A DNA stretch of 63,913 nucleotides, the filler included, from Octopus bimaculoides (lineage: Eukaryota): the NCBI RefSeq assembly GCF_001194135.2. It is 5 parts of 5 records of this genome, joined end to end, with 100 filler letters (N's around TTAATTAATTAA, not from the genome) between each part and the next. Parts side by side here need not be neighbours in the genome. Positions count along the whole stretch, not along the records: positions 38,637 to 61,684 come from NC_068997.1; 4 more parts are not named here. The stretch is one strand, 5' to 3'. The notes beneath the pieces were generated by a model that searched no databases, was not told the origin of the DNA, and saw only the letters and a list, made by a program, of their open reading frames with translations. Shown here piece after piece: positions 330 to 62,289 of this stretch. Made by a program: the position numbers and the translations under genes. How positions within the stretch are numbered: the stretch's first letter is position 1; every line of letters starts with the position of its first letter.

Positions 330-535
330 GAGAAGGAAGAATAACTACAGATTAGTGATTCTGCAAAGAAGGAGGCTTGGAAGTGCCACTATGAAAGGCA
401 GGGGAGAAGGGGAGCCTGCCCAGTGTGAATCCAACAGAGGGGCCAACTATTCGAATCAGCAGTAGCTTACTAGGTAAAGCAATTTTGGACCCAAATTTGG
501 ATCAAAGCTGTCTTGACATGGGAAGCCTATTGAAA
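330..535 (+). mobile_element. RTE-clade LINE fragment (APE-RT linker)
   Basis: SDSAKKEAWKCHYER and TEGPTIRISSSLLGKAI motifs, frameshifted. Confidence 0.65.
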
Positions 536-559
536 GTTTATATATGTGTGTGTGTGTGT

Positions 560-760
560 GTGTATGATAGGGTACTTAAGCTCAGGCAGGCATCATACAA
601 TCTGCCTTTCACTCTGAGAGAGAATCCCTTTGTTACCAGCAGAGGTAAGAACTTTCTGAATTTATCCCAACTTATTTGTATTCTAGCAGCTAAGCTCTCG
701 GTGCATCCACCCCTACTACTAACTTGGTCACCTAGGTAGTGGAAACCAGCAGCTACTTCT
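560..760 (-). mobile_element. RTE-clade LINE RT C-terminal fragment
   Basis: FHYLGDQVSSRGGCTESLAARIQISWDKFRKFLPLLVTKGFSLRVKGRLYDAC; homologous to 17750-17930. Confidence 0.85.
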
Positions 761-1262
761 NNNNNNNNNNNNNNNNNNNNNNNNNNNNNNNNNNNNNNNN
801 NNNNNNNNNNGTGAAGGAATCTATTTTCTGTACATTTATAGTGTTGATTGTATCTGTGCATCTTCCACACACAAAGACTATTTTCCCTGTTAACCTTCCT
901 CTGATATTCCTGCACCTCTTATGTATCCATTGCTTACACCAGGTACATCTTTTGGAATTTCTACCTATGCCTTTTTTTACATATCAAGCAGGGCCATCTA
1001 CCTGACTGGATTTGTGGTTTGTCTGCTTTCCTACTTATTAAGACTTTAGTTTTTGCTAGGTTAATTCTAAGGCCCATCGATTAGAAATAATTATCTTCTG
1101 TTAAATAATTAAATTTTATTTTAACTGTAAAATAATGTTACTTTACAGAAAAAAAAATCTCTTACAGGTTAATAAATTGATTATTACATTAATCCTATCA
1201 CTTGAAACAATTGCTTATGTAGGCTTCCACACAGTTTCCATTTACCATTATTCATGTTTCAG

Positions 1263-1410
1263 CTGAATTTGATTCTCCCTGGTGCTGTCAATCTGCCAGA
1301 TTCTCTTGATGATATTCTCCAACAGAAAGGTTCCACTGTATATTTCCTGAAAGGAATACCAATTTCTTTACTCATAGAACCAGATTTTTTGGAAGCTTTC
1401 TGCAAAAAAG
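1263..1410 (+). CDS. RPP40: RPP40 exon (first in window; 148 nt, phase 0 to 1)
   Basis: tttcag| acceptor and G|gtaaat donor. LNLILPG...YFLKGIPISLLIEPDFLEAFCKKG resembles human VSFLIP...YFVKNLPLHELITPEFISTFIKKG. Confidence 0.9.
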
Positions 1411-2409
1411 GTAAATGTACCTTTTTTATAATAATTTTCTCAAATGTTTCTATAATTTCTGGTTCTGTTCAAACGGATTGTTGTCTCATTGTCAGCATAA
1501 AAACTGACCAACTGACCATTATTACTCTTGATTGTTGCATCATTGTCAGCACAGACTGACCAGTAGATCCCAATGTGAATGACCCATAAGCCAATGGCGG
1601 ATCCTTTGCATTATTACTTAACCTACTAGAAATGGCAGCTAAATTTCCTTTAAATCACACTCTTATCTTAAAAAAAGAAGGGCACATTAATGTTTGGCAA
1701 ATGACAGGATGGTCAGGGCTAGAAACCCTTTCTCCAAAGGTCTGTTCTGCATGATCTTGACTAAACAATAGATGCCCCTGAGTGCTCATTGCCTAGTACT
1801 CACTTCTCAATGGCTCTGTTTTGTTTGGGCCACATTGTGAGTGCATACTGACCAACTGACCACATTTCCGTCCAAATGACTCCAATGGCTTCTTTTGAAC
1901 ATCAATTTTTTTGACTGGCCAACAGAGGGTTTTAATGACTTCATAACTTAACTTTTACCACTTAATTAGAATTTAAATATGATAAATAATATTTAGAGAT
2001 AGTTATAATATAGAAGTATTATTCACCTTTACCTACCCTCACTTCCTGTTCTTTTACTCCCAGGGTCTACACTGACCCCTCATGATACATGGCAAACTCA
2101 CTGTGCTGGTGCCACAAAAAAAATGCACCCAGTACACTGTAAAGTGGTTGGCATTTGGAAGGGAATCCAGCTGCAGAAACCATGTCAGAGCAGGCATTGG
2201 AGTTTGGTGTAGTGTTTGGACCGGTCAGACTCGGGCTAGGATGCAAAATGGGCATTAAATGATGGTGATGAAGAATTGTAATAGAGAAATATTTTAATAG
2301 GTATGTAATCCATTGTTTCATGGAAGATGGATGTTAAATGATGATGATGACGATGACGATGATGGTGGTGATGCAAACAAGAAAAATACAACTCAAAATA
2401 TGAGTATAT

Positions 2410-2411
2410 GT

Positions 2412-2443
<32 letters not shown>

Positions 2444-2670
2444 TGTTTAATGTCCGTTTTCCATGCTGGCATGGGTTGAACAGTTTGGCAGGAACTGACC
2501 AGCTGAAGGGCTGTTCGGGCATGGTTTCTATGACTGGATGCCTTTCCTTATGCCAACCACTTTACAGAATGTAGTGGGTGCTTTTACACAGCTGCTGACT
2601 CTCCAGACCTCAGTCAAACCGTCCAACCCATGCCAGCATGGAAAGCAGACGTTAAATGATGATGATGATT
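2410..2670. mobile_element. RTE-tailed SINE-like family with (GAT)n/(CAT)n tail (representative; further copies near 3280-3600, 4885-5470, 6930-7370, 8420-8770, 10520-10860, 13560-14090, 15645-15745, 20690-20897, 22230-22610, 24520-24760)
   Basis: Recurrent catcatcatttaacgtccgttttccatgctggcatgggtt...tttctacagctggatgcccttcctaatgccaaccact in both orientations. Confidence 0.85.
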
Positions 2671-4055
2671 TACTAAATAACAATGCAGTCTCCTTTTTGT
2701 GCATGCAGTAAATGTGGATGAGATTAATGGTGGGTGGTGGGGATAAGCCATAAGAGCCTTTAGGGGCAGTGGAGAGATTTCTGGTACTGGTGGTGGTGCA
2801 GAGGCGGAGTCATGAAGAGATTTCCAGTATAGGGGGTGGTGAGGTGGGCGGGGCAGGATTGGGTGGGTGCATCGCCAATAAGTAAAGAGGACAACTTGAT
2901 TGCATGAAATAGCAACCAAGACAGATAGAAATGAGAAGGTCAGAGAGAAAGAGACTTGACTGCCGAAGAAATCATTGCAGAATGCGGAAAGCCATGGAGT
3001 GTGACTCAGGGAGGGAATATTGTTGAAATGAAAGTGAGTGAGGAACATGAAGAAGTTGAAATTGTGAAAGTTAGTTTCAATGAAATTATTGTCAGGTTGG
3101 TAAAAACACAAAATAGATGAATGATGGTCAATCAAGGACAAGAGGAAAGTTTCTGAGGCTGGACAGGCCACGCATGGAATAGTAGCAAGAGCAGAGCAGT
3201 GTGAAAATTAAGGTGCCATATGGGCGAGAAGGGGTTTTATAAGTCAACAGCCAGAAGTGGACAAGAAAATAAGATAAGTTCATCATCATCATCATCATTT
3301 AACATCCGCTTTCCATGCTAGCATGGGTTGGACGATTTGACTGAGGACTGGCAAACCAGATGGCTACACCAGGCTCCAGTCTGATTTGGCAGAGTTTCTA
3401 CAGCTGGATGCCCTTCCTAATGCCAACCACTCCGAGAGTGTAGTGGGTGCTTTTTACGTGCCACCAGCACGAAGGCCAGTCAGGCGGTACTGGCAATGGC
3501 CATGCTCAAAATGGTGTCTTTTATGTGCCACCTGCACAGGAGCCAGTCCAGCGGCACTGGCAACGACCTCACTCGATCACATAAACTTGATCGCATAAAA
3601 TAGNNNNNNNNNNNNNNNNNNNNNNNNNNNNNNNNNNNNNNNNNNNNNNNNNNNNNNNNNNNNNNNNNNNNNNNNNNNNNNNNNNNNNNNNNNNNNNNNN
3701 NNNNNNNNNNNNNNNNNNNNNNNNNNNNNNNNNNNNNNNNNNNNNNNNNNNNNNNNNNNNNNNNNNNNNNNNNNNNNNNNNNNNNNNNNNNNNNNNNNNN
3801 NNNNNNNNNNNNNNNNNNNNNNNNNNNNNNNNNNNNNNNNNNNNNNNNNNNNNNNNNNNNNNNNNNNNNNNNNNNNNNNNNNNNNNGACTAAGTATATTT
3901 TTATTAATATTTAGCAGAAGTAACAGAGTGACTCGAGGTCTGAGAGTTTCATGCATTGGCACTTATCAGCTTTGGTAAGTGCCAACACAGGAAACTCTCT
4001 TGGACTTTGAATCACTCTGCTGCTTCTGCTAAATTTTAATAAAAATAGAAATATT

Positions 4056-31976: not shown

Positions 31977-32860
31977 TCTACTACATATGTGAGAAATTCT
32001 GTCTGTTGGTGTGTTTGTAGAGTTGTTAGCTAACTCTTCCTACATCGTTTTATCGATTTTGATGAAACTTGACACGTAAGTAAAACTCAGTACTGGAAAC
32101 AGCACGGCATAGTCAGATTGTTGAAAACTCGATAATAGGGCCCCTGGAGGGATCCTTATATATGCCTATTATATTTCATTTTAACAGATAAAGGGAATAA
32201 CTCATTTGCCCAGATTTTAACAGACAAAGGGAAATAACACATTCATTTTCCTAAATCATTTGGTATAAATCAAATTGAGTATGCTTATTTCTTAGTATTT
32301 GAACTGTTAGAGTTATTTTCGCAATCTATCCAGTACAACCCTTAAACAAGTAAATAGTGTTTTCCTAAACAATAGATCCACCTATTTCGGTTACCAACAC
32401 TAGCGCCGCTGAGGGTAATATTCTCTAGGAACGCACAAAAGGACTTTTCAGAGTTATTTACTTTGAATTGTTATTATCTCATATCTGATTAGACTGTTAT
32501 TACGTAACATGCTTCACGATTTTAGTATACATACCTTATTAGTATTTCCTTCTAAGTTCCATATACTCTGGGAACGCATTAAAGCCCTTTTCGGGGCTAC
32601 TTTATTTGAATTCTTACTATCAGGTAACTAATTTCATATTATTACATAACTGACTTCCCAATTTGAGTATTCATAACTTATTGGGAATTTCTAAAATCAA
32701 GATCTTGTGTAAGACAGTTCGGTATCCTCTGTAAATGCACAAAAACCGTTTTAAGGACTACATACTTCGTATTGTTGTTATTGGATTAGCGAAACAATTA
32801 TGAGAACGAACCCAAGGGATAAGCCCCGCTTTCACGGGAATTATCGGGTACGTCAGTTAG
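31977..32860 (+). mobile_element. Non-autonomous Helitron-like element
   Basis: a|TCTACTACATAT 5' end, subterminal hairpin CCCG-ctttca-CGGG, and 3' end TTAG|t (CTAG variant), inserted between A and T. Confidence 0.65.
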
Positions 32861-38636: not shown

Positions 38637-38686
<50 letters not shown>

Positions 38687-38841: not shown

Positions 38842-39400
38842 CTATGTATATTTCCTATATAATATTGGGGAAGTTTCATTTATGGGGACGTACTCCCGTA
38901 TTTGTCTGAGTGTTGGGTCCTTTGGGTGCTTGGATAAGATGCGGATGTCAGGTTGACCCAGGTTGCCTCCATGTTGGTCCTTGGCATGTTGGTAGAGTAT
39001 GGAGGACTGTTTTTCGTCGTCATATTGTCTCAAATGTTCATTTAGTCGTTCTGCAATGCTCTTAGATGTCTCCTCTATGTATGTCATGTTCATGTCTTTA
39101 CAAGCACCTTTTATGCATCTTATGCTGTAAACTACATTTCTCGCTCTACAGTCGATGCCAGGGCTAATCCTACATGCCATGCAGTTATCATTGGTGCATA
39201 TGGTATTCTCAAAGCGGTACATCCTACATAGTTGTGATCTGACGAAGTTCTCTGGCTTTTCAACAATCTTAATGTTGAATTTGGTCTCCTTCAGAGCTTT
39301 CCTCAATCTATGGGCTAGTTCTCCATGGGCTGTGGCCTCTACAAACATCACTCCTTGGTATTTGTTGGTTTTATACCACGTGTTCATTCTGTTTGCTTTG
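38842..39400 (-). mobile_element. Penelope-like GIY-YIG endonuclease fragment
   Basis: CRARNVVYSIRC...TYIEETSKSIAERLNEH...RILSKHPKDPTLRQIRE. Confidence 0.8.
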
Positions 39401-40338
39401 TGGTGAGTGTGTTAAATTATAAGGCACCAAAAGAGAATGACTCTCCCCAGACACAACAGAATATGCTTCAACACACGAACTCACATAAAAAATCTTGCAA
39501 ACCAAATCTATATGAGTTGGTTATATAAAAAGAAACCCGTTACTATTTTTATCAATATCTACGAGTTTTCGCAAATCCACACACACACACACACACACAT
39601 GTATGCACATGTATGTAAGCATATGGATATGAAAATAAACAGATTAACATACAGGTGGATTGGTTCATAGGTTATATGAACAGACAAGCATACATACGCA
39701 AATGGAGACTGAAACACATGACCATATGTACATACACACTTTACTTCAAACAAGGACACATATGGAGACACACGTCCACACATATGGAGATGTACATCCA
39801 TACATACAAACACGGTACATAGTTGCAAAACACACCCACTCAGACATGCACACACAAGGAGAAGAGGTACACACGCACATATACAAACGCACACACGCGC
39901 ACGCACACATACATAAAAATACACAAACACGGACATGCAAACACATGAATATGCAGAATACATACATACAAATGTACACACATAAATAGATACATATGCA
40001 CACACACATACATACATGTATATATACATGCATACATGCATACATACATACATACATACATGCATGCATGCATGCATACATACATACATACATATGCATT
40101 TTTATACTAATGTATACACAGAAAACTACACGCACATATATACACAATACGTCTCCGTGCGTAAGTATGTGTTAATGCACTGTATACATAATACGCGTCT
40201 AACACACACAACATTTACCGTTGTTAGTTAAAGACAGAAGAAAAGAAAAGAAAGAAAGAACAAGGAGAACCAGAGAAGTGGTGGTAAGGAGGGAAGAATG
40301 AAGAATATAAAAACGTTTTAATTTTGACACTGTAGCAT

Positions 40339-40900
40339 TCATAAGAGTATTTTTCCGCTCGACATTTTATATTTCACGGCGTGTCTGCAGGAATTTAACA
40401 GTTCCAACCTTTGGTTCAGGGCGTATTTATACTGGAAAAGGATGAAAATGTTTTCAGTCAGGCACGAATTGCATCTTATTGGCTCTCTATACGCTCCGTG
40501 TTTATATGGTACTGCTCTCTCCAAGATTTCCCAGTAGATAGTGGGAACATGCTTGATGAGACTCGTTGCTGTCCTATTTTCAAGAAATCGAAATGAATTT
40601 CGATGGGAATATAACTTGGTCTTGAAAGAATTTTCTGTAGCCCTTATATATGTCTTATATGTTTGTGAGCCATCTATTTGCACCTTAGCTCTATACACTA
40701 TTCCTTTCTCCAGACAATTTCCTCCCAACGGACAGCAATTGTGGTCTTTACAATTACACTTCTGGTTATTTCTAGCACTGTGGTTATTTCTAATAGTTTT
40801 CGCGTTGTGCTGGTTAATTAAAGAGACAAAGTTCTTGCAACAAGAATAGCTAACCTTCAGCGTTCTCCAAATTAAACATTTTATGGTACTTACGGTGTAC
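40339..40900 (-). mobile_element. Penelope-like GIY-YIG endonuclease fragment, second lineage
   Basis: CNC...CCPLGGNCLEKGIVYRAKV...YIRATENSFKTKLYSHRNSF...WEIL...CNSCLTE...LNQRLELLNSCRH. Confidence 0.82.
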
Positions 40901-41077
40901 TTGAAAGTGTTTAGAAACTAGTTTCAACAATTCCTTCCCTATATTAGTTTTTATGGCAATGTTAAATGTCGGATTAAATCACAAGACTTTCCTAGTTCTA
41001 GTCCTACGTGCTCTGTTATTGTTAGTTATGCTTTGACTATACTGGATCTTCTCCGAGAATCCACTGTTTCTTAATGC

Positions 41078-44774: not shown

Positions 44775-45827
44775 TCTTTGTGCATCTGTGTATCTTTGTG
44801 TCTGTGTTTATCCCGCACCATCGCTTGATAACTGGTGTTGATGTATTTACGTCACCGTAAATTAGCGGTTCAGCAAAAGAGACCGATAGAATAAGTACCA
44901 GGCTTTTGAAAAAATTAGTACTAGGGTCGATTCATTCGACTAAAAAATTTCCAAGGCAGTGCCTCAGCATGGTCGCAGACTAATGACTGAAACAGATTAA
45001 AGATAAAAGAATGACAGTGCTGTTGCTGTTGTTGTTGTGATGATAGATATTAACCCCTGTGTGATTACATGAACTCTTCGGCGGACTCTTATAAAGCGTA
45101 ACGGGTCTCATTGGGGTAAAGAAGTCGTTGGAGTCTCGCGGGTCGGTAGTCGGAAGCTAGTCTGTGAATACATTGTCCCCCCCCCCCCNNNNNNNNNNNN
45201 NNNNNNNNNNNNNNNNNNNNNNNNNNNNNNNNNNNNNNNNNNNNNNNNNNNNNNNNNNNNNNNNNNNNNNNNNNNNNNNNNNNNNNNNNNNNNNNNNNNN
45301 NNNNNNNNNNNNNNNNNNNNNNNNNNNNNNNNNNNNNNNNNNNNNNNNNNNNNNNNNNNNNNNNNNNNNNNNNNNNNNNNNNNNNNNNNNNNNNNNNNNN
45401 NNNNNNNNNNNNNNNNNNNNNNNNNNNNNNNNNNNNNNNNNNNNNNNNNNNNNNNNNNNNNNNNNNNNNNNNNNNNNNNNNNNNNNNNNNNNNNNNNNNN
45501 NNNNNNNNNNNNNNNNNNNNNNNNNNNNNNNNNNNNNNNNNNNNNNNNNNNNNNNNNNNNNNNNNNNNNNNNNNNNNNNNNNNNNNNNNNNNNNNNNNNN
45601 NNNNNNNNNNNNNNNNNNNNNNNNNNNNNNNNNNNNNNNNNNNNNNNNNNNNNNNNNNNNNNNNNNNNNNNNNNNNNNNNNNNNNNNNNNNNNNNNNNNN
45701 NNNNNNNNNNNNNNNNNNNNNNNNNNNNNNNNNNNNNNNNNNNNNNNNNNNNNNNNNNNNNNNNNNNNNNNNNNNNNNNNNNNNNNNNNNNNNNNNNNNN
45801 NNNNNNNNNNNNNNNNNNNNNNNNNNN

Positions 45828-47833
45828 TCTGATATTGTCAGTAATGTTGAAAGCAGGCAATTACCAACCAAGCTATCCAATGTCCAGACACTTCAACATG
45901 TAAAGACCTCTTAAGTATAAAATCAATCACAATAATGAAGAGGAAATGAAATAAAATGCTGCTTTATCTCATGATATTTCAGTCGTTTTATTGGTTGATT
46001 TTAGGCCGCAGCCTAAGTTTTATATTGTGATTTAAGTATGTTGGTTATAAGGAATTCTCTTGTAACGAAATATTTCCTGCTTGGACAAGTGTTGAATATT
46101 ATCAAAGGACATTTTCTTGAGTTAGCACCATTAATGATTATTTTCCTTTGATCAGCTATGTTAGGCAACATAAGACTCTGTTCGCAATAAAATCTTATTT
46201 ATTCTTCGCAGATACAAAACTTACACTAGAATCCAAAATGTATTGTTTTTATTACAATTATATGACTGTTTGGTAAAATTTGTAAATAAAAACTTCTTCA
46301 CAAGACACCCTCACTGAATATTAAAACGGTCATCAAGAGATATATATTTGTTTCATTCAGAATATAAATCTTCAATATGTCGAATATTGCTAAACATATG
46401 AGATGGACTTAAAGTAAGAACTATATTCCATACATGAGTAACTAAACATAATTTTCTCGGTCTTTAGCAATTTCCATATTTGTCTTTCATGACAGGCGCA
46501 CTTCCTACATGAACAAAATTTCTACACTAATTCCCATCAATTATCTGTATACTAGCTTTTTTTTTCTTTTTGATTCGTCTTTGGAACATTTGAATTGGTT
46601 TCCCTCAAGATCACATACACTTCTGCAATCAATTTTTGTTTAACTAATTTTCCTTCAGATTCGTTAGAATCCTTATTTTTATTATTTGTATTGATTTATT
46701 AGAATTAGCTCTTGGTTAGAACTTTGAACTGTCTACTTATTGAACAGGTTCCCAGTCACTCTGTTGAACCATTTATCATTGTACGGTCCTTTATATTTAC
46801 CAACAGAATTTTCAATCTTTATAGTTTCCATCATCTTAAAGAATTATTAATTCTGTTCTTTTCCACATCTTCAGACTGATTAAATAATGCCTAAAACTGG
46901 GTCACGGTTTGATTGTTCTTCAACTTATCTATACCGAAAGTCTTTGTTGATTCTTGAGCATGCTAAACTTCCGGGAATTTCTATTGAATTTTAATACCAA
47001 GTATATAACTTTCGATTCTGATATCTTTAAAAAGACACCAAATGTTACAACGTACCATTATCTTGGCAACAAAATATACAGAGTCTTCAAAGAAATTATA
47101 ATATTCTTTTAATGCGATCGAATTTTTCTGAAGAACGAGAAAATTCAGCTACCAAAATCATAACAATGACAGAGATAATAAAGACCGTCATCATTTTGTG
47201 TGTGATAAATAAAAAAAAAGCAGGAACTTTATTCTGTTTAGTTAATGTATTGGTCATTAGAAATATTCTATTCAAATATTACTTGATCTTCCGTAAACAT
47301 GGAAATTGTGAGAAAATTACAAATCGTTTCACATAAAAACTTTGTTTAACTATTTCTATAAAATCCACAATAACTTGATTTCATTAAGATTACACACCAA
47401 TATGGAAATATTCGTTGTTGAACGATGTTTAGCAAAAACAAAAGCAGGGGCGACAATTTAACATCAAAAATTGAAATAAAACTGAAATGAATCGATACAT
47501 CAGCGTTTCAATTAATTAAATTTGGAAATAAGTAGTAATGAGGTGAGGGATTATGTTAGTCTGGTCTTTAGTAGATAGTGTAACATAGAAAGGGCACAAC
47601 AGTTTGAAAATGCAAGTGGATATCGGTAGCGAATTAATCTTAATATTCTAAGTAACTTTCAAATACTTATTAGTCAACCAAAACGTCTTGAAAGCCATCA
47701 ACACGTTCGCTAATTTTATGGTTCAACAGTGAAGCCATAAGACATTTTTTTTAAGTCTCTTGGAACAGGCTTCCGTTTTCATATATCTGTAGTCGTCGTA
47801 GATTTAATAAAAATTACGGTCTTACTGAAACTA

Positions 47834-47880
<47 letters not shown>
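45828..47880. repeat. Segmental duplication copy 1 (paired with 59099-61684)
   Basis: Collinear blocks 45828-46340/59099-59599, ~47385-47455/~60482-60552 and ~47511-47880/~61343-61684. The first ~200 bp appear identical. Confidence 0.93.
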
Positions 47881-47893
<13 letters not shown>

Positions 47894-48330
47894 GTGTAAA
47901 ATATTAATTGCAAAAGACAAATGGATTCTGTTGTTCTTTAAGGCCGAAGATACTGATGAGCTTAAACTTTATTAACTTTTTAATGAAATATGTTAGTAAT
48001 TTATGAAGGACTTTACATCTATACAGTATCAATATTTATGCAGTGTCCACGGCCTCACAGTAACATTAACACAGTCCGAGAATAAAGCAGTTATTGCAGC
48101 AAGGTATACACGGGTTCGATATCAATACACCGCTACCCTTTCGGGAAAATAAATGGGGCGAGATGATGCGGAAAAATTCCGGTCTAAGCCTTGTAAAAGA
48201 ACTTGGAAGGTTGGGCCTCCAACCAGGCCTTTCGTGACACCTTTAAAGTCAGGAACTTTTCAATACCTCCTCGTACACCTGTTAGAAAATGTATCTCATA
48301 TTTTACTTTGTCTTTCTTTTAATATTTCAG

Positions 48331-48424
48331 ATAAATGTTCTAAAAATCAAGCCCTAACCTTCTTAAACTTCGTTAAATGTGAAAAAGATGGATCGTTCTC
48401 CCGTGTACAGTGTTCAAACGAACT
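48331..48424 (+). CDS. Thyroglobulin type-1 (thyropin-like) gene, TY1 N-half exon (94 nt, phase 1 to 2)
   Basis: tctttcttttaatatttcag|AT and CT|gtaagc. DKCSKNQALTFLNFVKCEKDGSFSRVQCSNE contains the C..DG.F...QC motif. Confidence 0.87.
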
Positions 48425-48449
48425 GTAAGCAAAATAAGTTCAATATCTG

Positions 48450-48504
<55 letters not shown>

Positions 48505-51338
48505 TATATATATATATATATACTTTTATTCTTTTACTTGTTTCAGTCATTTGACTGCGGCCATCCACACACAAAAAAGATTAGCTACAAGAAATAACTC
48601 AGTGGCTAATGGCATGTATTTGAACAGCAGACAAATATAGACGTATCAAATATCATACAACATAAATTTCTATATATAAAATTATCTTGGCCTCTAGGTG
48701 ATGTGTCATAATTACAAAATGTTAAGACCACCTCTAGATGAGACGGGAAGATAATCTCAAGTATCAATATTTCGCCTAAGTTGACATACTAAGTAGGTAA
48801 GGGACAGGCTTATAGTCTGGACATAACGAAGTGAGTACTGTTTCTGCTTCAGTATACGTCATCAGCACGAAAATTGTCCAGTATTGCCTCTAGTGTCCAA
48901 GGGACTTAAACCTACGGGAAAAGAGTAGAACATTTTTATGTCCTAGGACATTAGCATAGTTTAAACAAAAATTGATCCAAAGAAATAAGTTCATATACAT
49001 TCCATTAGCGAATGTATGAACAACATGCACATATACAGTTATGTCAAATAGCATACGACAGAACTTTTTGATTTATTAAAATTATCTCTGCTTTTAGAGG
49101 ATGAGTAATCACAATAAATGTTCTACACTATCAGACTACAGAACAATGGAAGTATACTTCCACTTCTTAGCTGTCGATGTCGCCAACATTTCTGTTATTG
49201 TAAATGTGTGCTTTAGAAGTTCGCTTCTCAACCCCGTGGTTTCGAATTCGGATCATATTGCATGGTATTTTGAACAGTGGTTTTTTGCCATAACTTCCAG
49301 GTTACTAATATCTTGAGAATAGACTTCATCACACGTAACCTGTATGGAAGCCTACCACATATGCGCATTCCTATGCCTTTTGCCGATCTATTTCAGCACT
49401 GGATGTAGAAATTGTTGAAAACCCAATACTCTTCGAACGTAACTCCTGTCTAAAAATAAAATCTTTTTCCGCGCATTACTGACTCTCATTTGTCGCACTT
49501 GCCATAAAGGATGCTATGAACCAGTAATCGGTCCGTTTTAAACTTGTTCACGCGGCTAGCATTTTTGAGGGGAGGGAATTAATCGACTACATCAACCCCA
49601 GTGCTTCACTGGTACTTTATTTTATTGACCAACTGAAAGGGATGAAGGGAAAAGTTGACCTTGGCAGAATTTGAACTCAGAAAGGTAAAGAGCCGGAAGA
49701 AATTACTCTAATAATTTTATCCTGTGCGGTAACGATTCTGCCAGCTCACCGCCTTTTGCAAACTGCAATGCAAAATATTTTAGAAATATAAATAAAATTT
49801 ATGAATGTAACTTTTGGATGTTGTTAAATTTATTCCAACTACTTGAAGTATTTCAAATTTTCACCTGATTATTTTCAAAAACTGTGGTTTTGATGTAGTT
49901 TTGCAAACCAATGAAGAAAATTGGTTTTTTTTTTCTTGTTTTTGTAGAAATAAAGAAGTTACAAGCATTTAAAATTATGTAATGTTAGCCAATGGAAAAC
50001 CTCCATTGCTGATGTATACACAACGAAGACAAAATCTTTACGTGTCTCTCAACTTGCTAGAAATAGCTGCTCAATCTTCCTTAAACTACACGTAACGTGT
50101 TAAAAACAATAAGGATGACACAGTATATGATGTTGTTCGGACAGACTTCTGCTGAGTCTCTTAATTTATTTTTTCATTCATAATTAGGGTATCATTGCAT
50201 CATAATACGGTCCTAAATTCACAGCAGCTCTAAACGTGTCTGTTAGACGTAATCATATAAAAATCGTACGTATTAATAAGAAAAACATAGCGTGTTTCAG
50301 AGCAGTGTTTGTAATATATATACACATTTTAATTTTGGTTTCAAATTTTGGCACAAGGCCAGCAATATAGAGGGAGAGGGTAAGTCAATTACATCAATTC
50401 CCAGTACTCAACTGGTACTTATCGACCGTGAAAGGATGAAAGGCAAAGTCGACCTCGGAGGAATTTGAACTCAGAGCATGAAAACAGACGAAATGCCGCT
50501 AAGCATTTTGCCCGGCGTGCTAATGATTCTGCCAGGTTCCCTCATTTTTTTTTTTTTTTTATAACATTCAATATTACAAAACTGGCGGATTGTAAGGGAG
50601 CGAGCTGGCAGGACTGTTATCAAGTCGGATAAAATTCTTAGTGACATTTCTTTCGACTTTACGTTCTGTGTTCAAATAACGCCAAAGTCGACATTGCTGT
50701 TCGTCCTTTCGGGGTCGATAAAACAAGTGTCTGTTGAGCATTAGGATCGATTTAATTGACTTAGCCCCTCCCGAAAAACCGTTGGCCTTGTACTGAAATT
50801 TGAAATCAATATTACAAAATTGATGTAAATCATTTCAATAAACTTACTTCAATTCAGCTTTCATGGATAAAAACCAACACAGGAAACATTTATAAAGTTC
50901 GTAAATGCTTTGGAATACAACGTTGTATTACTGAAATTATAGGATACGGTTTTTAAATTCTGAGAACTGTTTACCAAACTGGGCAACTAATTCTGTTTTC
51001 AATAAAGAATTTACTTGGGCAATCACTAAAAATAGCAACTAGATTTTCCTCTAATCACACCCGTTTTATGAACCCATTTAACGACGTGCCTTTAGGTATT
51101 CAAAAAGACGTAATGCCTGATCTAAACAACGACTATGAATTCGGTTTACTTTTTTCAATAATTGTTCTCAGCTCCAAGAATTAAGGTCTAATTTATAAAT
51201 GGAACACTCACATCTTAGAAAGGTTGTATTCTAAAAAGAATTTAAAATCTTTTCCTCGTTTAATATACGGTCGCACCTAATTACTTGCATGTTGTAAGAG
51301 GAAACTACTTTAATATAAAGTTTTTTTTTTAATAACAG

Positions 51339-51418
51339 CTGCTTTTGTATTACATATGATGGACGCATGATTGATGGCCTTACTGTTAAAAAGGCTCATA
51401 AGGCAGGCATGACTTGCA
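51339..51418 (+). CDS. Thyropin-like gene, TY1 C-half exon (80 nt, phase 2 to 1)
   Basis: ttttttaataacag|C and A|gtaagt. CFCITYDGRMIDGLTVKKAHKAGMTC is a CWCV..G variant; phases match both neighbouring exons. Confidence 0.87.
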
Positions 51419-52551
51419 GTAAGTAGATTTCAAGGCAATTCTCTTGTAGATACAGAAATAAAGGTCGATAAAATAAGTATCAATTGAGTACTGGAGGTTG
51501 ATGTAATCGACTTGCCCTTTCCCCCCGATATTCTAGGACTTGTGCTTATAGCAGAAAGGAATTATATGTGGTTTAATCAGATACATATTTTTATTTGGCT
51601 TAATCAAATGAAAGAAAGCTCTTTGCAGGTCCACTAAGACTTATAAGATTGTAAGTATATACCATGGCAAAATACATTATTTGCCATAATCATAATTAGC
51701 TGGCGTTAATTACCAGGCATGGTTATATAATTAAGTTCGCTACATAATCATGTCTTCGGGTTTGGCCCCATTGCGTAGCACCCTGGGTCAACCAATACCT
51801 CGGATCAGTCAACGCCTTGTAAGTCAAATTTTGGCAGACAAAAACTGTCTAGTCAAGCACGGAATCCCATCGTGCTTGTGCGTATATATACTTATCAATC
51901 GAACTCTCTTTCTCGAAATGCTAAGTTATGAATCAATGGCTGTTAAGTGACATAAACGTAAGCCACTTAATAGCCAATGGCCCCTGACTTAGCAATTCAA
52001 CAAAAAGAAATCGATTCGAGGAAATTAGTTCAGAGTTCGGTATGATCAACTAATCCCTTCAAGACGGCACCCCAACACTGCCACGATCGAATGACTAAAA
52101 CCAGCAAAAGAATTGAAGAATATACCTATTCGTTGGTGAATTGGTGTAAGGCTGCGTTAATAAGCAGTAAAAGTTCTGTTGGGTACAATTTTTGGTTTGT
52201 ATTTTTTAACAGAAAAATTGATACCCTTCTTTTTTTTTTTTCTTAACCCATGTTAAACATAAATTCCAAGCTCCGGAAATAATACAGCAAATTTGATTTA
52301 TTATCTCAGATAAATCCTTGTCAGGTGTTTTCTGTTTAGATCCACGTTAAACAGTTAACCACGCTAACTTTTAAAAAATCTATCTAACATTCCACACCAG
52401 ATGGATTAACGCATACTTTCGCAGTATAGAAACTAAATATAATTGATCTGCCTAAATTATGCTTTAAATCTATCGATCATTGGTGTCGTTGGTCAAAATT
52501 ATTGACTATATCTGGCTTCTTTTTTCTTTTCCTTTTTTTTTATTTTTCAAG

Positions 52552-52737
52552 ACTGTGCTGTTGACAAAAGAGAAAGCGAATTGAGAGGAGATACGTCAAA
52601 AATCTTTTGGTGTCAGAAAAATGGCAATTATAAGAAAATCCAATGTCAAAATAGCAATTGTTACTGCGTAAATCCTCGGGGAATTCAAATAGGAATTGGT
52701 GTGCCTTTTACAAGAGTTCAATACCTTCTGTGCTCTG
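52552..52737 (+). CDS. Thyropin-like gene, complete TY2 exon (186 nt, phase 1 to 1)
   Basis: Long pyrimidine tract, caag|AC and G|gtaagt. CAVDKRESELRGDTSKIFWCQKNGNYKKIQCQNSNCYCVNPRGIQIGIGVPFTRVQYLLCS has six Cys. Confidence 0.9.
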
Positions 52738-53660
52738 GTAAGTAGAATGGCTTATTTACTAAGCTATAATATTCAGAAGTGATACGGCTGTGTGAATGAG
52801 TTTACAGTTGATAGGTTACAGGACTTCTCTTTTTCTTTTTACTCGTTTCCGTCATTGTGGCCATGGTGAGGCACTGCCTTGAGACAATTTTACTAAAAAC
52901 CTACTCCAGTATTTATATCTTTTGCCGAACCGCTAAGTTATGGGAACGTAAACACACCAACACCGATTGTCAAGCAGCCGTGGGGGGACAGACATGGACA
53001 CGAATACACAAATACAGATTTAAATGATGGGCTTCTTTCAGCTTCCACCTGTCAAATTCACTCACAATGCTTTGATCGGCCCAAAGGTATAGTAACCAAG
53101 ATGCCACGCAGTCTCTGTCAGGGACAAACCCTTGATATGGTGGTGCAAGTTTCGGAAGAAGATATAGAAAAGATGGTCGAGATCATCACAGTCGGAGAGA
53201 CAACATTGAAAGTCAGAGTGGAAAGGTGGATTCCGCGGTGCTATAAATGTGGTCTGAAAGGCCACATTAGAGCGGATTGACTCTGCGTAGAACCTTGGGC
53301 AAATGTCTTCTAGTGTAGCCTTGGGCCAACCAAAGCCTTGTGAGTGGATTTGGTAGACAGAAACTGAAAGAATCCCGTCGAATATATGAGTAAAATATTC
53401 AAAATGAATACTCGCAAAGATGTTATTGTTATTATCATTATTATTATTATTATTATGGTTAGCATGCCAGGCGAACTGCTTAGCGGTATTTCGTCTGCCA
53501 CTACGTTCTGAGTTCATATTCCGCCGAGGTTGACTTTGCCTTTCATCCTTCCAGAGTCAATAAATTAAGTACCAGTGAAACACTGGAGTCGATGTAATCA
53601 ACTAGGCCTTGTGCCTTCAGTAGAAAGAATTATTATTATTATTATTATTATTATTAAAAA

Positions 53661-53963: not shown

Positions 53964-55986
53964 ATTATTATTATTATTATTATTATTATCATTATTATTA
54001 TTATTAGCAGCAGCAAATCTAATAATTGATAATAATAATAATAACAATAACATTAGTGGGAGCAGGCGATATTAGCATTAAACAGCTATATATTGAATTT
54101 ATAATGATATTAAAGGGTACACGAAGTAAAAATTGCAGCTTAACTACCAATTTCACTGAAAATATGTAACGGACAAACAGAAATCGGGCAAACGAGTGGA
54201 ATTTAACATATCATCTAAGCTAAAAAGCCGTAGAATAAGGTAACAGATACACCTGGATCGTGATTTCGAAATCTGACCAACGCCTCAATTCTCGTCAGCA
54301 GTTCTTGCTGTACCTAAACTGAAAAACTCATCTCGCCTCGTCGTAATCCGTTACGTCTTGAATAGTCCCGCGCCAAATTCAAAACAATTTCAAAGCATAA
54401 TACATACATACATATATATATATATAATTAACATAATATGGTAAAAATTCGATATTAATTAATATCAATTTAATACCAGGAAACTAGCACATTAAAAGAA
54501 TCAGAAGGTTCTTGAAAAAATTTTTCGAGATCCTAAAAAGATTATAGTACTTGTGTATATAATATTGACCAGTGACCGGTCTGTCAAAATGCTAGAAGAA
54601 GCTCACTTAAAAAATTCTCAAATACGGATTCAGCGGAGCAAAAACAGGCGGGCTAGACCAGTGAAAATTGTACATACCTCGATTATCTGCAGACTATAGT
54701 TTCAAANNNNNNNNNNNNNNNNNNNNNNNNNNNNNNNNNNNNNNNNNNNNNNNNNNNNNNNNNNNNNNNNNNNNNNNNNNNNNNNNNNNNNNNNNNNNNN
54801 NNNNNNNNNNNNNNNNNNNNNNNNNNNNNNNNNNNNNNNNNNNNNNNNNNNNNNNNNNNNNNNNNNNNNNNNNNNNNNNNNNNNNNNNNNNNNNNNNNNN
54901 NNNNNNNNNNNNNNNNNNNNNNNNNNNNNNNNNNNNNNNNNNNNNNNNNNNNNNNNNNNNNNNNNNNNNNNNNNNNNNNNNNNNNNNNNNNNNNNNNNNN
55001 NNNNNNNNNNNNNNNNNNNNNNNNNNNNNNNNNNNNNNNNNNNNNNNNNNNNNNNNNNNNNNNNNNNNNNNNNNNNNNNNNNNNNNNNNNNNNNNNNNNN
55101 NNNNNNNNNNNNNNNNNNNNNNNNNNNNNNNNNNNNNNNNNNNNNNNNNNNNNNNNNNNNNNNNNNNNNNNNNNNNNNNNNNNNNNNNNNNNNNNNNNNN
55201 NNNNNNNNNNNNNNNNNNNNNNNNNNNNNNNNNNNNNNNNNNNNNNNNNNNNNNNNNNNNNNNNNNNNNNNNNNNNNNNNNNNNNNNNNNNNNNNNNNNN
55301 NNNNNNNNNNNNNNNNNNNNNNNNNNNNNNNNNNNNNNNNNNNNNNNNNNNNNNNNNNNNNNNNNNNNNNNNNNNNNNNNNNNNNNNNNNNNNNNNNNNN
55401 NNNNNNNNNNNNNNNNNNNNNNNNNNNNNNNNNNNNNNNNNNNNNNNNNNNNNNNNNNNNNNNNNNNNNNNNNNAAGGATGTTTTGCCTCGTGACTGGCA
55501 CGCACTGATTAGATTTTGGGACCTGTTTTTTTATTACCCATGCGGGTTAACATAGAGGTGACAAAACAAAACATGTGGGGCATAAAACATATATTTAAAA
55601 AAATAGAAATGAATGTTATAATGTATGAAGACATGAATATGAAAAATGGAAATGGAACCACTCGTCCCACTTCCGAGTGGCCTTATTTTCTACTTTTTAA
55701 ATCCTGAACCTTCCAACACATCGATACCTGTTTCCTCCAACCACCCATCGTAAGTTGTAAAGCCTGGGAATGAGCTCCAGCTGCAGTTCACCTCCCAAAA
55801 ACAAAATCAAACCATATATTCTTGTATTTTTCCCTCCTGCTTCTTGTCTGGTATTACGCACAAGTGGTGTTCCCCCACGTTATCATACCCCGCAGTTCCA
55901 ATACACTTTATGTCCTATTCCGCCGAATCCCTTAACAGTTCGTCGCTAAGCAACATGTAAATCCTACACTTTTTCCGTCTCTTTTT

Positions 55987-56750
55987 TTATTTGGGGGAGG
56001 GGTTTTGGGTTTCTTTGTATGTGTTTGCCTCTTGTTTTTGTGTCGGATGGAAATGGATATGCCTAGTGTCTGCAGGGAGTGGGTGGGTCTGAGAGGCCGT
56101 GGGTGGGATGGGTGTGGAATGGGGTTTACAGTTTAGTTCACTTGCCTTTTTTCGTTTTCTTCCTGTCACATTTTCCCATTTATTTTTCTCTATTTCCGCT
56201 ACTTCCTTTTCTTTTTCGGTTACTTCCTTTCCGCGGCTCTCTTCTATCTTCTCTTCCATATTTTCTTGTCGCTTTTCCTCTGGTTTTCTTGGCTTTGATG
56301 TCATTCTGCTCTTATGTGTCCCTTCAGGCCACATGTAAAGCAGCGTGGAACTCTTCCTTCCACCCTGACAGTCATAATTTTTTCTTCCATAATTATTGTT
56401 TCCATAATCTTTTCCATCGTTTCTTTTGAACTCTGGACTATCATCTCCAGTGATTGACCTCTCCAGTTGACGCACTCTTTTTTCTTGGCCTGGAGCACCA
56501 CTATGTTGTCCTCATTACCAAAGAGGACCGCATCTGCCACCCAGGTCACATCAATCTCCGGTAAGATTCCTTCGACTGTGACCCTTGTTGCTCTCATGCC
56601 TCTATGCGTGGGCAACAGCACCACTTCTTCGCTCCGAATTGTCAGGGTGGTTGGTGGTTGGTGGAAGCTATTCTGGCTGCCACCGAGGAGAGTCCCGAAT
56701 TGGGACCAGTAGGAAGAACGAGCATGTTAAACTGATGGGGATGCGGTGTT
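55987..56750 (-). mobile_element. LINE ORF1 (gag-like CCHC knuckle) remnant, L1/Tx1-like
   Basis: VTVEGILPEIDVTW...VRVEGRVPRCFTCGLKGHIRAE, then a 1-nt frameshift into a K/E-rich tail. A homologous fragment lies at 53113-53283 (+). Confidence 0.7.
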
Positions 56751-57393: not shown

Positions 57394-59098
57394 NNNNNNN
57401 NNNNNNNNNNNNNNNNNNNNNNNNNNNNNNNNNNNNNNNNNNNNNNNNNNNNNNNNNNNNNNNNNNNNNNNNNNNNNNNNNNNNNNNNNNNNNNNNNNNN
57501 NNNNNNNNNNNNNNNNNNNNNNNNNNNNNNNNNNNNNNNNNNNNNNNNNNNNNNNNNNNNNNNNNNNNNNNNNNNNNNNNNNNNNNNNNNNNNNNNNNNN
57601 NNNNNNNNNNNNNNNNNNNNNNNNNNNNNNNNNNNNNNNNNNNNNNNNNNNNNNNNNNNNNNNNNNNNNNNNNNNNNNNNNNNNNNNNNNNNNNNNNNNN
57701 NNNNNNNNNNNNNNNNNNNNNNNNNNNNNNNNNNNNNNNNNNNNNNNNNNNNNNNNNNNNNNNNNNNNNNNNNNNNNNNNNNNNNNNNNNNNNNNNNNNN
57801 NNNNNNNNNNNNNNNNNNNNNNNNNNNNNNNNNNNNNNNNNNNNNNNNNNNNNNNNNNNNNNNNNNNNNNNNNNNNNNNNNNNNNNNNNNNNNNNNNNNN
57901 NNNNNNNNNNNNNNNNNNNNNNNNNNNNNNNNNNNNNNNNNNNNNNNNNNNNNNNNNNNNNNNNNNNNNNNNNNNNNNNNNNNNNNNNNTTAAGGCGGTG
58001 ACCTTATAGGATCCTTTGCACGCCAGGCAAAATGTTTAGCGGAATTGCGTCCGTCCTTATGTTCTGAATTCAAATTCCGCCGGGTTGACTTTGTCTTTCA
58101 TCCATTCGGAGTGAAGTAACTAGTATGTTTCAGTTTGGTTCTGAGGTCGATGTAATCGACTTACCTCCTCCTCCTCCTCCTAAATTTTTGGCCTCGCGCC
58201 AAAATTTGAATGCATTATTATTGTCGTTGTTTTTGTTGTTGTTGATGATGATGATATTATTACTATCATTATTAAGGCTTTGAGCAAGCAAAATCGTTAG
58301 CACGCCGGGCAAGATGCTTAGCGGCATTTCGTCCATCTTTACTTTCTGAGTTCAAATTCATCCGAGGTCAACTTTGCTTTTCATCCCTTGGGGTCGATGA
58401 AATAACCACCAATTACGCACTGGGATCGATGTAATCGACCAGCCTCCTCCCTCAAAATTTCAGGCCTTATGCCTGCAGTAGGGAAGATTATTACTGCTGT
58501 TGTTGTTTATCACCAATGCCGGCCATGTTTTGAAACTCCGAAAGTCTGCGCTTTGCTTTCCTTATTAGAAGTTGAATGTTATTAATTTTATTGCTGTATG
58601 TTACTTGCAAGTTGATCTGAACCATATTGGTCTCATCAACTATTTGATATGCTTGACCTACGGGCAAACAAATTGGAAGAGAAAAGTGTTTCTTCTCGTG
58701 ACATTGGAAAATTTTCAATATTGAGTCGTCTTCATCATCGAACCCAGATAAGAGAAAGGTGGAAGGAAATTTCTTTTTCGCCGTCATTTTCTCCCACAGA
58801 ATTTTACAAACACAAATAAAGTAGTAGCAAGAACAACAACAGCAGCAGTAGCGACTGCAGCTTGAAAAATGAAATATCGAGAAATGAAGCTCAAAAATTT
58901 ACCTACGGCAGCAGTGTGATTATGAAGTCAGCTTGGTAGCAAGGTCATCTGCTCTACGACATTAAGTCACTGGATGTAGATATGGTCGCCATCAGTGAGA
59001 CCAGAGTTTCCGATTCTCAAGCTTCTATACCCATCCTCAGTGTTACTGCTGCCTCTCCAAACATAAATTTTCTCAGTTACATGATTCGTCCAGAGATT

Positions 59099-61684
59099 TC
59101 TGATATTGTCAGTAATGTTGAAAGCAGGCAATTACCAACCAAGCTATCCAATGTCCAGACACTTCAACATGTAAAGACCTCTTAAGTATAAAATCAATCA
59201 CAATAATGAAGAGGAAATGAAATAAAATGCTGCTTTATCTCATGATATTTCAGTCGTTTTATTGGTTGATTTTAGGCCGCAGCCTAAGTTTTATATTGTG
59301 ATATAAGTATGTTGGTTATAACACAAAGGAAATTCTCTTGTAACTAAATATTTCCTGCTTGGACAAGTGTTGAATATTATCAAAGGACATTTTCTTCAGT
59401 TAGCACCATTAATGATTATTTTCCTATGATCAGTTGTTAGGCAACATAAAATCTATTATTCCAAGCTTATTTATTTTTCGCAGATACAAAACTCTCACTA
59501 GAATCCAAAATGTACTGTTTTTATTACAGTTATATGACTGTTTGGTATAATCTGTAAATAAAAACTTCTTCACTGAACATTAAAACGGTCAACAAGAGAA
59601 TCATCATGAGATAGCTCGATTTGCTAGTAATAACAGCCAAATGTCCTTGAGTCGCACCTTATTATCTTAAAACAACGAAAACATTGACAAAGTAATCTTT
59701 GATGTACAGACTGTCGAGATAATCACGTCTGGAATGCTTTTTATTATATATCAAATGTCCCTTGTCATCTTCATGAGGTTCAGCCAGCTGCTATTAACCT
59801 TCACCATTTGTCCCAATGTCTTCCTTGTTCTTCTTCGGTCGTAGATTCCTTCTACTTGGCTCACCACTTCTTTATCCAATTCTCAACATTCATACATACG
59901 CATCACAAACCCGTACCAGCTTAGTCTTATTTCTTAAGCACAATACCTGATGGTTCTTAAACTTAGTTTTTATTTCGGCTCATTTATGTTTCATCATTCA
60001 ATAAGCCTAAAATAATACTCACTAAAACCCTGGAGCCCTTCATTATCCAGGTTGATCTCTAATTAGTTATGTTTTTATCATCAGGTATGAAACAGTTGGG
60101 ACAGTGTAGAAAACTATTTCCGTTGATTTCAAAGTGAAAACACAATTTTCGAAACTAGTTAGATCTTTCAGATTAGGAATCATAATTTCTCATTTGAGAA
60201 AGATCTAGAAAATTGCGTGCCTTCTCTCATTTGGGAGGGGCTTGGCTCACTAATATGTTTGTGGACAAATAAAAAGATAAAATACTTTAAACACATTACT
60301 GTTCTTCAACTTCTAGTCAGGCCTAATCGGGCGGGTCCTTGATTAGATGCCTTCTAACCATAACCATCCGGAGCTTCATAATCAGTTAAAGAAATTATTA
60401 TTAAAGAAATTATTATTGTGTCCTAACCACAAAATCATACTCCTTCACACGACTTGGATAATATACATAACTTTGCGTCAATAAGATCATACACGAATAT
60501 GGAAATATTTGTTGTTGAACGATGTTTATCAAAAACAAAAGCAGCGGCGACAGAGACTTTGAAACAGCTTGCTGCCAGATGCTGGAAGGACTGATCATCG
60601 TATCAGGACCTTCCTCTTGACAGCTTTACAGCGCACCAAACAGCTCACTGGGGTGACGCTCCAACTGCATGATGAAACTCTTCAGCCAGGTTTCATCATT
60701 ACTTTTCAGCCATATCCAATGGCTATCTGGCTGGCTGACTGGCTGGCGCACTCAACTGTCACCTGGACCTCCGTCAAGATGGTGTTTGCTTGTCGGTGTT
60801 GGACACCAATTGATAGCAGTCACCGTCTCAGTCTAGTCCAAGTAAAACCTCCGAATTCAACTTATTCAAGAAAGTGTACTGCACCCCAATTAACATCTAT
60901 ATAGTCTTCCTGTAGCATTTCGTAACACTCGTCTTTCCTAACCACGGCTTGCTCGTGAAATTAACGTGCAAGTGGCGGAAATATAGTCATAGCAGATATT
61001 CTGCTCAATCCCACAGATTTGTTTGTCAGTTGTTTGACCTTAACCACTTGAGCATGTCCCTTGGTTATTGAAAATATGTGTATCTCTGATCATGAGCAAG
61101 TGTGGTGGAAGAGCATTATAGCGATGTGTTGAGAGGGATACTTTGGGGTTTCAATAAACGTAACAAAAACAAAATTTGATGGAAATATTAGTCATTTTTC
61201 ATACTTTCTTGGGGTAAGCAAATAGGAAGTAACAGTTGCTACCCAAGGACAGAAATCGTGTTACACAGTGTTATCTTATGCTCCTCACACGATATCGTCA
61301 TATCCGGTTTCTTCCTGAAATGAGTCGATATACCAGAGTTCCGATTAATTATAACTGGAAATAAGTAGTAATGGGGTGAGGGGTGACAGTAGTCTGGTCT
61401 TTAGCAGATAGTGTGACATAGAAAGGGCACAACAGTTTCAAAATGCAAGTGGATACCGGTAGCGAATTAATCTTAATATTCTAAGTAACTTTCAAATACT
61501 TATTAGTAAACCAAAACGTCTTGAAAGTCATCAACATCTTCGCAAATTTTATGGTTCAACAGTGAAGCCATAAGACTTTTTTTTTTAAGTCTCTTGGAAC
61601 AGGCTTCCGTTTTCATATATCTGTAGTCGTCGTAGATTTAATAAAAACTACGATCTTGTTGAAACTAGTGTGTGTGTGTGTGTG
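59099..61684. repeat. Segmental duplication copy 2
   Basis: Same three blocks as copy 1 with different intervening insertions; ends in (TG)n at a linker gap. Confidence 0.93.
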
Positions 61685-62289
61685 NNNNNNNNNNNNNNNN
61701 NNNNNNNNNNNNNNNNNNNNNNNNNNNNTTAATTAATTAANNNNNNNNNNNNNNNNNNNNNNNNNNNNNNNNNNNNNNNNNNNNGTCTGTCTGTTGCTCA
61801 TCTAGTTCTGGTAATGACATTATCAGCTTCCAGTAGAGGGAGCCACTGTTTTGACCTGAAAACAAACAAGAAAAATTGAGATCAAAAGTTACAAACATTA
61901 TAAATAAATATCAGAAAACAGGTGAAGGTGTGGTAAGAAGTTTGTTTGCCAACCATATGGTTCCAGCTTCAGTTCCACACCATGGCATCTTTAGCCTAGA
62001 CCAAGGATTTGCGAGTGGATCTGATTGGTAGAAACGGAAAGAAGTCCATCTCTCCCTTGGCCAGGTAACCATGTCCCCACCTCTACAGCAACACACCTGT
62101 TTCTGCCTCTCTTATGTCTTTATTGCCCACAAGGGGCTAAACATAGAGGGGACAAAAAGGACAGACAAAGGGATTAAGTCGATTACATCAACCCCAGTGC
62201 ACAACCAGTACTTAATTTATCGACCCCGAAAGGATGAAAGGCAAAGTCGACCTCAGAGGAATTTGAACTCAGAACGTAACAACAGACGA

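Follow-up and report, generated by a model that had tools for sequence, protein, structure and literature searches.

A tandem duplicate of a two-domain thyroglobulin type-1 gene in Octopus bimaculoides and a candidate revised model for LOC128249693

The window described here is a stretch of 63,913 nucleotides (filler included) of Octopus bimaculoides DNA, of which the part at positions 38,637 to 61,684 (the piece) comes from NC_068997.1 and is 100% identical to chromosome CM046617.1 (GCA_001194135.2). Three short exons in this piece encode two consecutive thyroglobulin type-1 (TY) domains. On balance, and with moderate confidence, we favor the interpretation that they encode the mature part of the protein of LOC128249693, the second of two tandem copies of a two-TY gene that belongs to the thyropin-like family and has a layout like that of the tick protein IrThy.

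All three exons lie where an earlier note on this DNA, made from the sequence alone, had placed them (Table 1); each has an AG immediately before it and a GT immediately after it, and the phases of the flanking introns are 1-2, 2-1 and 1-1, respectively. Spliced together they give the peptide of 120-121 amino acids proposed in that note, with one base (G) supplied by the upstream exon. For exon 1 the AG is at 48329-48330 and the GT at 48425-48426, the preceding intron being phase 1 and the following one phase 2; it is a 100% match to RefSeq isoforms X2 and X3, and its homologue is exon 1' of the tandem paralogue described below. Exon 2 has an acceptor consisting of a long T tract followed by AG and a donor, CAG/GTAAGTAG, that is identical in the paralogue, and both its frame and all three of its cysteines are kept in exon 2' of that gene. 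Exon 3 is a 100% match to isoform X1 through ...CSGK. Its 3' end reads TCT GGT AAG TAG, with an in-frame TAG at 52743-52745, two codons past the putative donor, such that a transcript left unspliced at the 52737 GT reads G-K-stop, and this is where X1 terminates. The second TY domain (TY2) is thus a single-exon module, and the first (TY1) is interrupted after its third cysteine. Exons 1 and 3 are present at 100% identity in the RefSeq proteins of LOC128249693 and all three exons are kept with their borders in the tandem paralogue, and these sequence matches confirm that the three exons are not a chance occurrence.

Table 1. Coding exons and introns of the two-TY gene in the window.
Feature	Position	Strand	Description
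Coding exon 1	48331..48424	+	(D/N)KCSKNQALTFLNFVKCEKDGSFSRVQCSNE + L(partial); Cys1-Cys3 of TY domain 1; 94 nt
Intron 1	48425..51338	+	2914 nt, phase 2
Coding exon 2	51339..51418	+	CFCITYDGRMIDGLTVKKAHKAGMTC; Cys4-Cys6 of TY domain 1; 80 nt
Intron 2	51419..52551	+	1133 nt, phase 1; splits Asn codon of C-N-C junction
Coding exon 3	52552..52745	+	Whole TY domain 2 (CAVDKRES...YLLCS); 186 nt to putative donor after 52737

The paralogue is situated approximately 9 kb upstream of the start of the piece, with its coding exons at coordinates 486-3628 of the O. bimaculoides locus record L001 (window coordinates equal L001 coordinates plus 19549). It has the same three coding exons with the same phases and splice-site sequences, and its C-N-C is likewise split by a phase-1 intron. 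Its products, XP_014772367.1 (P0003, 148 amino acids) and XP_014772368.1 (P0160, 142 amino acids), are named 'thyroglobulin isoform X', X1-X3 in O. bimaculoides, and the protein is complete, comprising a signal peptide, a TY domain, C-N-C, a TY domain and a four-residue tail, DNRS. Orthologues that are more than 88% identical are present in O. sinensis (XP_029646880.1, 'U24-ctenitoxin-Pn1a-like') and O. vulgaris (CAI9734992.1), and the protein is complete at 142 amino acids in the three Octopus species. Colinearity between the two copies extends from the signal exon to exon 3, and the window copy shares 51% amino acid identity and 12 of 12 cysteines with the paralogue at 32% nucleotide divergence. 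The paralogue provides the strongest support both for exon 2 and for the reading of the window gene as a stand-alone two-domain protein.

The two copies nonetheless differ in several respects. The same GTAAGTAG follows exon 3 in both, but the paralogue splices from this GT to a 14-nt terminal exon encoding the tail DNRS, whereas the window copy is annotated only with the read-through end GK*; no significant homologue of the 14-nt terminal exon or of the paralogue's 3' untranslated region (UTR) was found downstream of exon 3 in the window. The database models of the paralogue include all of its exons, and those of the window gene do not. In TY1 the paralogue keeps F-P-A-C where the window copy has F-V-K-C. 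The paralogue is acidic to neutral, with an isoelectric point (pI) of 6.1, and has two N-x-S/T sites, whereas the window copy has a pI of 9.1, 19 lysines and arginines against nine aspartates and glutamates, and no N-x-S/T site. Glycosaminoglycans modulate IrThy, and given this modulation the shift in charge between the copies may matter for function.

The earlier note had described two TY domains of six cysteines each, joined by a CxC junction, and had proposed PF00086 as a check. The spliced peptide matches PF00086 with an E-value of 2.2e-15 and 56.3 bits in total over two stretches, and TY1 and TY2 (exon 3) taken alone score 33.6 and 35.5 bits, both above the gathering cut-off of 20.6. There are 12 cysteines, six in each domain, and the domains are joined at C58-N59-C60; the junction reads M-T-C-N-C-A-V-D and fits the family consensus M-x-C-x-C-A-[RV]-D. 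The core G-x-[FYW]-x3-Q-C is matched in both domains, by CEKDGSFSRVQC and CQKNGNYKKIQC. The departures from CWCV and the missing proline to which the note had drawn attention are also there, the motifs being CFCI and CYCV with P-x-C nowhere in the peptide. In the family alignment C[YF]CV and an absent proline are the norm in the second domain; in the first, the isoleucine of CFCI differs from the valine of the family majority. Every invariant or near-invariant family position is kept except for Pro15, which is replaced by valine, if the leading methionine column is set aside, a position at which the mature sequence cannot have methionine. A full PROSITE PS00484-type pattern has no match in the octopus peptide, but only seven of the 20 other sequences in the family alignment match it, and this pattern is therefore a loose signature and not a requirement.

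Structural modeling agrees with these assignments and with the TY fold of an N-terminal helix, a beta-hairpin and three loops. An AlphaFold2 (AF2) model of the exon 3 product has a pLDDT (predicted local distance difference test score) of 85.3, and its top 32 Foldseek matches in the PDB are all TY domains; the two-domain model of the paralogue (pLDDT 89) also folds as TY domains. The best PDB matches of the AF2 models are saxiphilin, thyroglobulin, p41 in complex with cathepsin L (1ICF), IGFBP and Trop2. The modeled TY2 of the window copy superimposes on the p41 fragment (1ICF) with a root-mean-square deviation (rmsd) of 1.6 Å over 40 residues, and on the saxiphilin TY pair (6O0F, 8D6G) with a template modeling (TM) score of 0.60 and an rmsd of 2.5-2.7 Å over 55-57 residues. 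The TY domains of p41 and saxiphilin are the structural templates of the three-loop wedge mechanism, but they sit inside large proteins (CD74 and a transferrin-like protein, respectively), and are approximately 30% identical to the octopus copy, in which the CWCV tryptophan and the loop L1 proline are not kept.

A full HMMER scan with the paralogue returned 330 proteins at E<=1e-3. There are many secreted two-TY relatives of 140-170 amino acids that share the junction M-x-C-x-C-A-[RV]-D and extend little or not at all beyond the last cysteine, including proteins in the annelid Owenia, the nemertean Tubulanus ('equistatin-like'), the bivalve Mactra, in which a pair has adjacent locus tags, scallops, and the gastropod Gigantopelta. 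The names in use for the family are 'U24-ctenitoxin-Pn1a-like', 'equistatin-like' and 'thyroglobulin-like'. On these sequence comparisons the octopus copy is a member of a known invertebrate family of short secreted two-TY proteins that are presumed to inhibit cysteine proteases. Together with its paralogue it forms a tandem pair from a cephalopod and so extends the little-studied group of short two-domain thyropins, in which tick IrThy is the one member with a biochemical characterization.

IrThy, from the saliva of Ixodes ricinus, is a secreted protein with two TY domains, both of which take part in its inhibition of cathepsins V, K and L; its C-K-C junction has crossed inter-domain disulfides with altered pairing in the C-domain, and short two-TY proteins of this kind are mostly invertebrate (PMC10889554). 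Like the octopus copy it consists of two type-1A TY domains only, with a mature length of approximately 120-150 amino acids, and it has a signal peptide where that of the octopus copy is putative. The junctions are C79-K80-C81 in IrThy and C58-N59-C60 in octopus. The IrThy C-domain (8R6T) matches the family profile with an E-value of 1.3e-4 and 25 bits, which is a generic TY-level likeness only, and the cathepsin V, K and L inhibition measured for IrThy contrasts with an octopus copy known here from its sequence. A close homologue of IrThy is U24-ctenitoxin-Pn1a of the spider Phoneutria nigriventer (P84032) (PMC10889554), and the spider 'ctenitoxin family' to which the name refers has a predicted signal peptide followed by two consecutive TY domains (PMC8746590) and is highly expressed in venom glands and midgut. 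The likeness of this spider protein to the octopus copy, which the earlier note had pointed out, is one of layout, compared by description, and it is borne out by the name that NCBI gives to the O. sinensis orthologue of the paralogue. Equistatin of Actinia equina is also secreted and built of tandem TY domains only, but it has three of them where the octopus copy has two; its domain 1 inhibits papain-like enzymes and its domain 2 cathepsin D (PMC10889554). Several of the spiralian relatives are named 'equistatin-like' by NCBI.

The 5' end of the window gene lies outside the piece, within which no upstream coding exons were found. The annotated 5' exon is at L001 10001-10243 (starting at approximately 29550 in window coordinates), 18.8 kb upstream of exon 1, and its open reading frame (ORF) of 80 codons, used by all isoforms of LOC128249693, matches no Pfam family. 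Homologous stretches at the O. sinensis locus (L002 8890-9225) and the O. vulgaris locus (L004 47769-47891) carry stop codons and lie approximately 0.8-1 kb upstream of the start codon of the paralogue. Judging from these sequences, this exon has probably been mis-called as coding and belongs to the 5'UTR. A second copy of the paralogue's signal exon is situated between the annotated 5' exon and exon 1, at L001 13137-13199 (window 32686-32748), also outside the piece and 15.6 kb upstream of exon 1. This duplicated signal exon, the only convincing one for the window gene, encodes a putative 17-residue signal peptide, MKLLLVILSSVVVATQA, has an intact AG acceptor and a phase-1 donor, GCAA/GTAAGT, and joins exon 1 as ...TQA-N-KCSKNQ. 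Were the 5' exon spliced to the signal exon, the upstream ORF would be terminated, and the signal-exon methionine would serve as the start of translation. No database model uses this exon. The resulting precursor is predicted to be 139 amino acids long and the mature protein 122 amino acids, with a mass of 13.7 kDa; we infer from the sequence that exon 2 and the signal exon would be used in the mature mRNA and that the product would be secreted.

The signal exon and at least 60 nt of the downstream intron are 100% identical between the two copies (L001 13137-13199 versus L003 34977-35039), whereas the flanks of this exon are 87-92% identical and the rest of the duplication 69-75%. This pattern suggests gene conversion or strong constraint. 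A haplotig or misassembly was considered as the source of the second signal exon and is unlikely, with flanks only 75-92% identical.

The earlier note called this a hidden gene, and this is correct only in part. The locus of the three exons is already in RefSeq as LOC128249693, an 'uncharacterized protein' with isoforms X1-X3, but exon 2 and the intact two-domain frame are missing from all three models. In X1 (XP_052830007.1, 145 amino acids) exon 3 directly follows the 5' exon, and the C-terminus is ...LLCSGK*. In X2 (XP_052830008.1, 121 amino acids) the 5' exon is followed by exon 1 and this by exon 3, and skipping exon 2 shifts the frame to a stop at ...SNELLCC*. X3 (XP_052830009.1, 116 amino acids) has the same joins from another 5' donor, with the same frameshift between exon 1 and exon 3 and a stop (ELLCC*). 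If these models are supported by reads, they indicate that some transcripts, at least, leave out exon 2. The gain from our analysis is a likely correction of the gene model, in which LOC128249693 should probably consist of the signal exon and exons 1, 2 and 3, encoding the two-TY precursor of 139 amino acids in place of three truncated isoforms.

In the product that we favor, a basic mature protein of approximately 122 amino acids would consist of TY1 (exons 1 and 2), C-N-C and TY2 (exon 3), with three residues after the last cysteine, and would be preceded by the 17 residues MKLLLVILSSVVVATQA from the duplicated signal exon. By analogy with the known thyropins, the three loops of each TY domain would wedge into the active-site cleft of papain-like cathepsins, and the two domains may differ in specificity, as do those of equistatin and IrThy. 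Protease inhibition by the octopus copy, for which the thyropin mechanism is the most likely, is proposed by analogy only.

A number of observations weigh against a functional inhibitor, and many of them would fit an alternative, which we consider unlikely but well worth attention, in which the window copy is transcribed but decaying, its RNAs all mis-spliced and lacking the signal exon and exon 2, its products truncated or not secreted, and its intact frame a relic that has yet to erode. The signal exon and exon 2 are absent from all three RefSeq isoforms, two of which are frameshifted, and the ORF of the annotated 5' exon has the features of a 5'UTR already described. If the RefSeq models are based on RNA-seq, they speak, for the sampled tissues at least, against the junctions 48424/51339 and 51418/52552. 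The exon 2 peptide is in no protein of a 5.8-billion-cluster collection, and an exact look-up of the intact candidates of 203 and 139 amino acids in a 15-billion-protein collection returned neither. The near-invariant proline of P-x-C in loop L1 of domain 1 is replaced by V15. The ratio of nonsynonymous to synonymous substitution rates (dN/dS) is 0.61-0.85 against the paralogue, compared with 0.36 between the paralogue and its O. sinensis orthologue, and the exon identity of 70% is approximately that of fixed intron flanks of 60, 100 and 150 bp (69-73%). Around the paralogue in O. vulgaris (-48/+10 kb) and O. sinensis (+/-10 kb), the only two-TY gene found is the orthologue of the paralogue itself, and an orthologue of the window copy was not seen in these ranges. 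The synonymous divergence (dS) between the two O. bimaculoides copies is 0.42-0.60, or four to six times that between species (0.10). Either O. sinensis and O. vulgaris have lost the second copy or it is located further away.

Against decay stand an open frame, six canonical splice sites and 12 of 12 cysteines at 32% nucleotide divergence, a combination that is improbable under neutrality; in a neutral simulation the probability of keeping all cysteines with no stop is at most 0.012 at 10% divergence and approximately zero at 25%. The invariant family positions are also kept, apart from the proline and the methionine column noted above. Moreover, in a relative-rate comparison the two copies have diverged symmetrically from 18 outgroup family members, which argues that the window copy is no more degenerate than its conserved and clearly functional paralogue. 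In a separate comparison of BLAST-defined blocks the exons appeared to evolve faster than the introns (69.9% versus 83.4% identity, p=3e-7), a pattern that would have pointed to accelerated evolution of the toxin type, but this is an ascertainment artefact that is gone when fixed flanks are used.

Many TY domains are not protease inhibitors, those of the IGFBPs, nidogen and thyroglobulin among them, and inhibitory and non-inhibitory TY domains cannot be told apart by sequence alone. The window copy could therefore encode a functional secreted two-TY protein that acts instead as a toxin-like ion-channel modulator, an inhibitor of aspartic proteases in the manner of equistatin domain 2, or a binder of ligands or toxins like the IGFBPs and saxiphilin, although we regard this as rather improbable. 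The TY fold is a versatile scaffold, the PDB neighbors of the models include non-inhibitory domains of IGFBP, EpCAM/Trop2 and thyroglobulin, and the pI of 9.1 as opposed to 6.1, the fast-evolving loops and the lost L1 proline all speak for such a role. A venom fraction of the spider Latrodectus containing U24-ctenitoxin-like peptides affected insect Nav channels (PMC8746590), but this sodium-channel claim comes from a mixed chromatographic fraction. Conversely, IrThy, equistatin, p41 and saxiphilin all inhibit cathepsins, and IrThy is the only biochemically characterized protein of the same layout (PMC10889554). The posterior salivary gland proteome of O. vulgaris, considered as a source of support for salivary expression, was set aside, as the TY protein in it is a different, saxiphilin-like protein of 227 amino acids; for the same reason it lends nothing to a non-inhibitory role.

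The earlier note had left standing the option of a larger modular protein. That these exons contribute to such a protein, of the nidogen, SMOC, testican or saxiphilin type and with its remainder outside the piece, is highly improbable. Most TY domains in databases do lie in multidomain proteins, the best distant HMMER matches to the paralogue are multi-TY proteins of 400-3000 amino acids, and the 5' end of the gene is outside the piece. However, there is an in-frame stop two codons past exon 3, the chain in family members stops at the last cysteine or a few residues from it, and the paralogue of the same structure, which effectively excludes a modular protein, is complete at 142 amino acids in three Octopus species; its O. 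bimaculoides proteins of 142-148 amino acids have a signal peptide and two TY domains only. The piece, in its stop-to-stop frames, and 43 kb of L001 revealed no further Pfam domain or TY-like frame; specifically, EGF, Kazal, EF-hand, transferrin and IGFBP N-domains are absent from the frames of the piece and from the paralogue proteins. The stand-alone layout proposed in the earlier note thus holds.

The favored two-TY reading could be taken further, although this is a speculative and doubtful extension. The dN/dS of 0.6-0.85, the change from a roughly neutral to a strongly basic charge and the loss of the L1 proline, all on a strictly conserved disulfide scaffold with a conserved signal exon, would make sense if the window copy were a paralogue restricted to this lineage or lost in O. 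vulgaris and O. sinensis, with its loops under diversifying selection toward a new target such as another class of protease, an enzyme of prey or pathogen, or, as has been claimed for U24-ctenitoxin, a non-protease. Such a protein would be a recruited secretory effector and not a housekeeping regulator of cathepsins. If both octopus copies are active and have different specificities, they would constitute a small natural experiment on TY loops and protease selectivity.

The TY exons are flanked by a direct repeat of approximately 2-2.6 kb with approximately 91% identity (45828-46340 versus 59099-59599, and 47482-47850 versus 61315-61684). Its copies are 13.3-13.8 kb apart, the upstream one starting and the downstream one ending at an assembly gap, and they are far more alike than are the two gene copies (approximately 70%). 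Assembly gaps are present at 45189-45827, 54707-55474 and 57394-57989 and beyond 61684. The repeat could be a dispersed element, or the mark of a further, younger duplication with exons on the far side of the gap at 61685.

When both strands of the surrounding piece were scanned with Rfam and Pfam and for tRNAs, only a sub-threshold zinc knuckle came up. This is in one of two related open frames, at 52897-53277 (+) and 56304-56726 (-), that end in CCHC zinc-knuckle-like motifs, RCYKCGLKGHIRAD and RCFTCGLKGHIRAE; the zf-CCHC match is confined to the first (17 bits, below the cut-off), with none in the second. Located downstream of exon 3, these frames look like oppositely oriented fragments of retroelement gag genes. 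Two further open frames of approximately 190 codons with cysteine-rich stretches, at 38845-39411 (-) and 40342-40917 (-), have no Pfam match and may resemble the GIY-YIG region of Penelope-like elements. Intron 1 has an (AC)n microsatellite near its start, at 48454-48500, and several copies of a dispersed repeat of approximately 170 bp, in both orientations (49573-49756, 50381-50535 and 50594-50763). Many copies of this repeat with 72-82% identity are present at the O. sinensis and O. vulgaris loci, and it is therefore similar to a short interspersed nuclear element (SINE).

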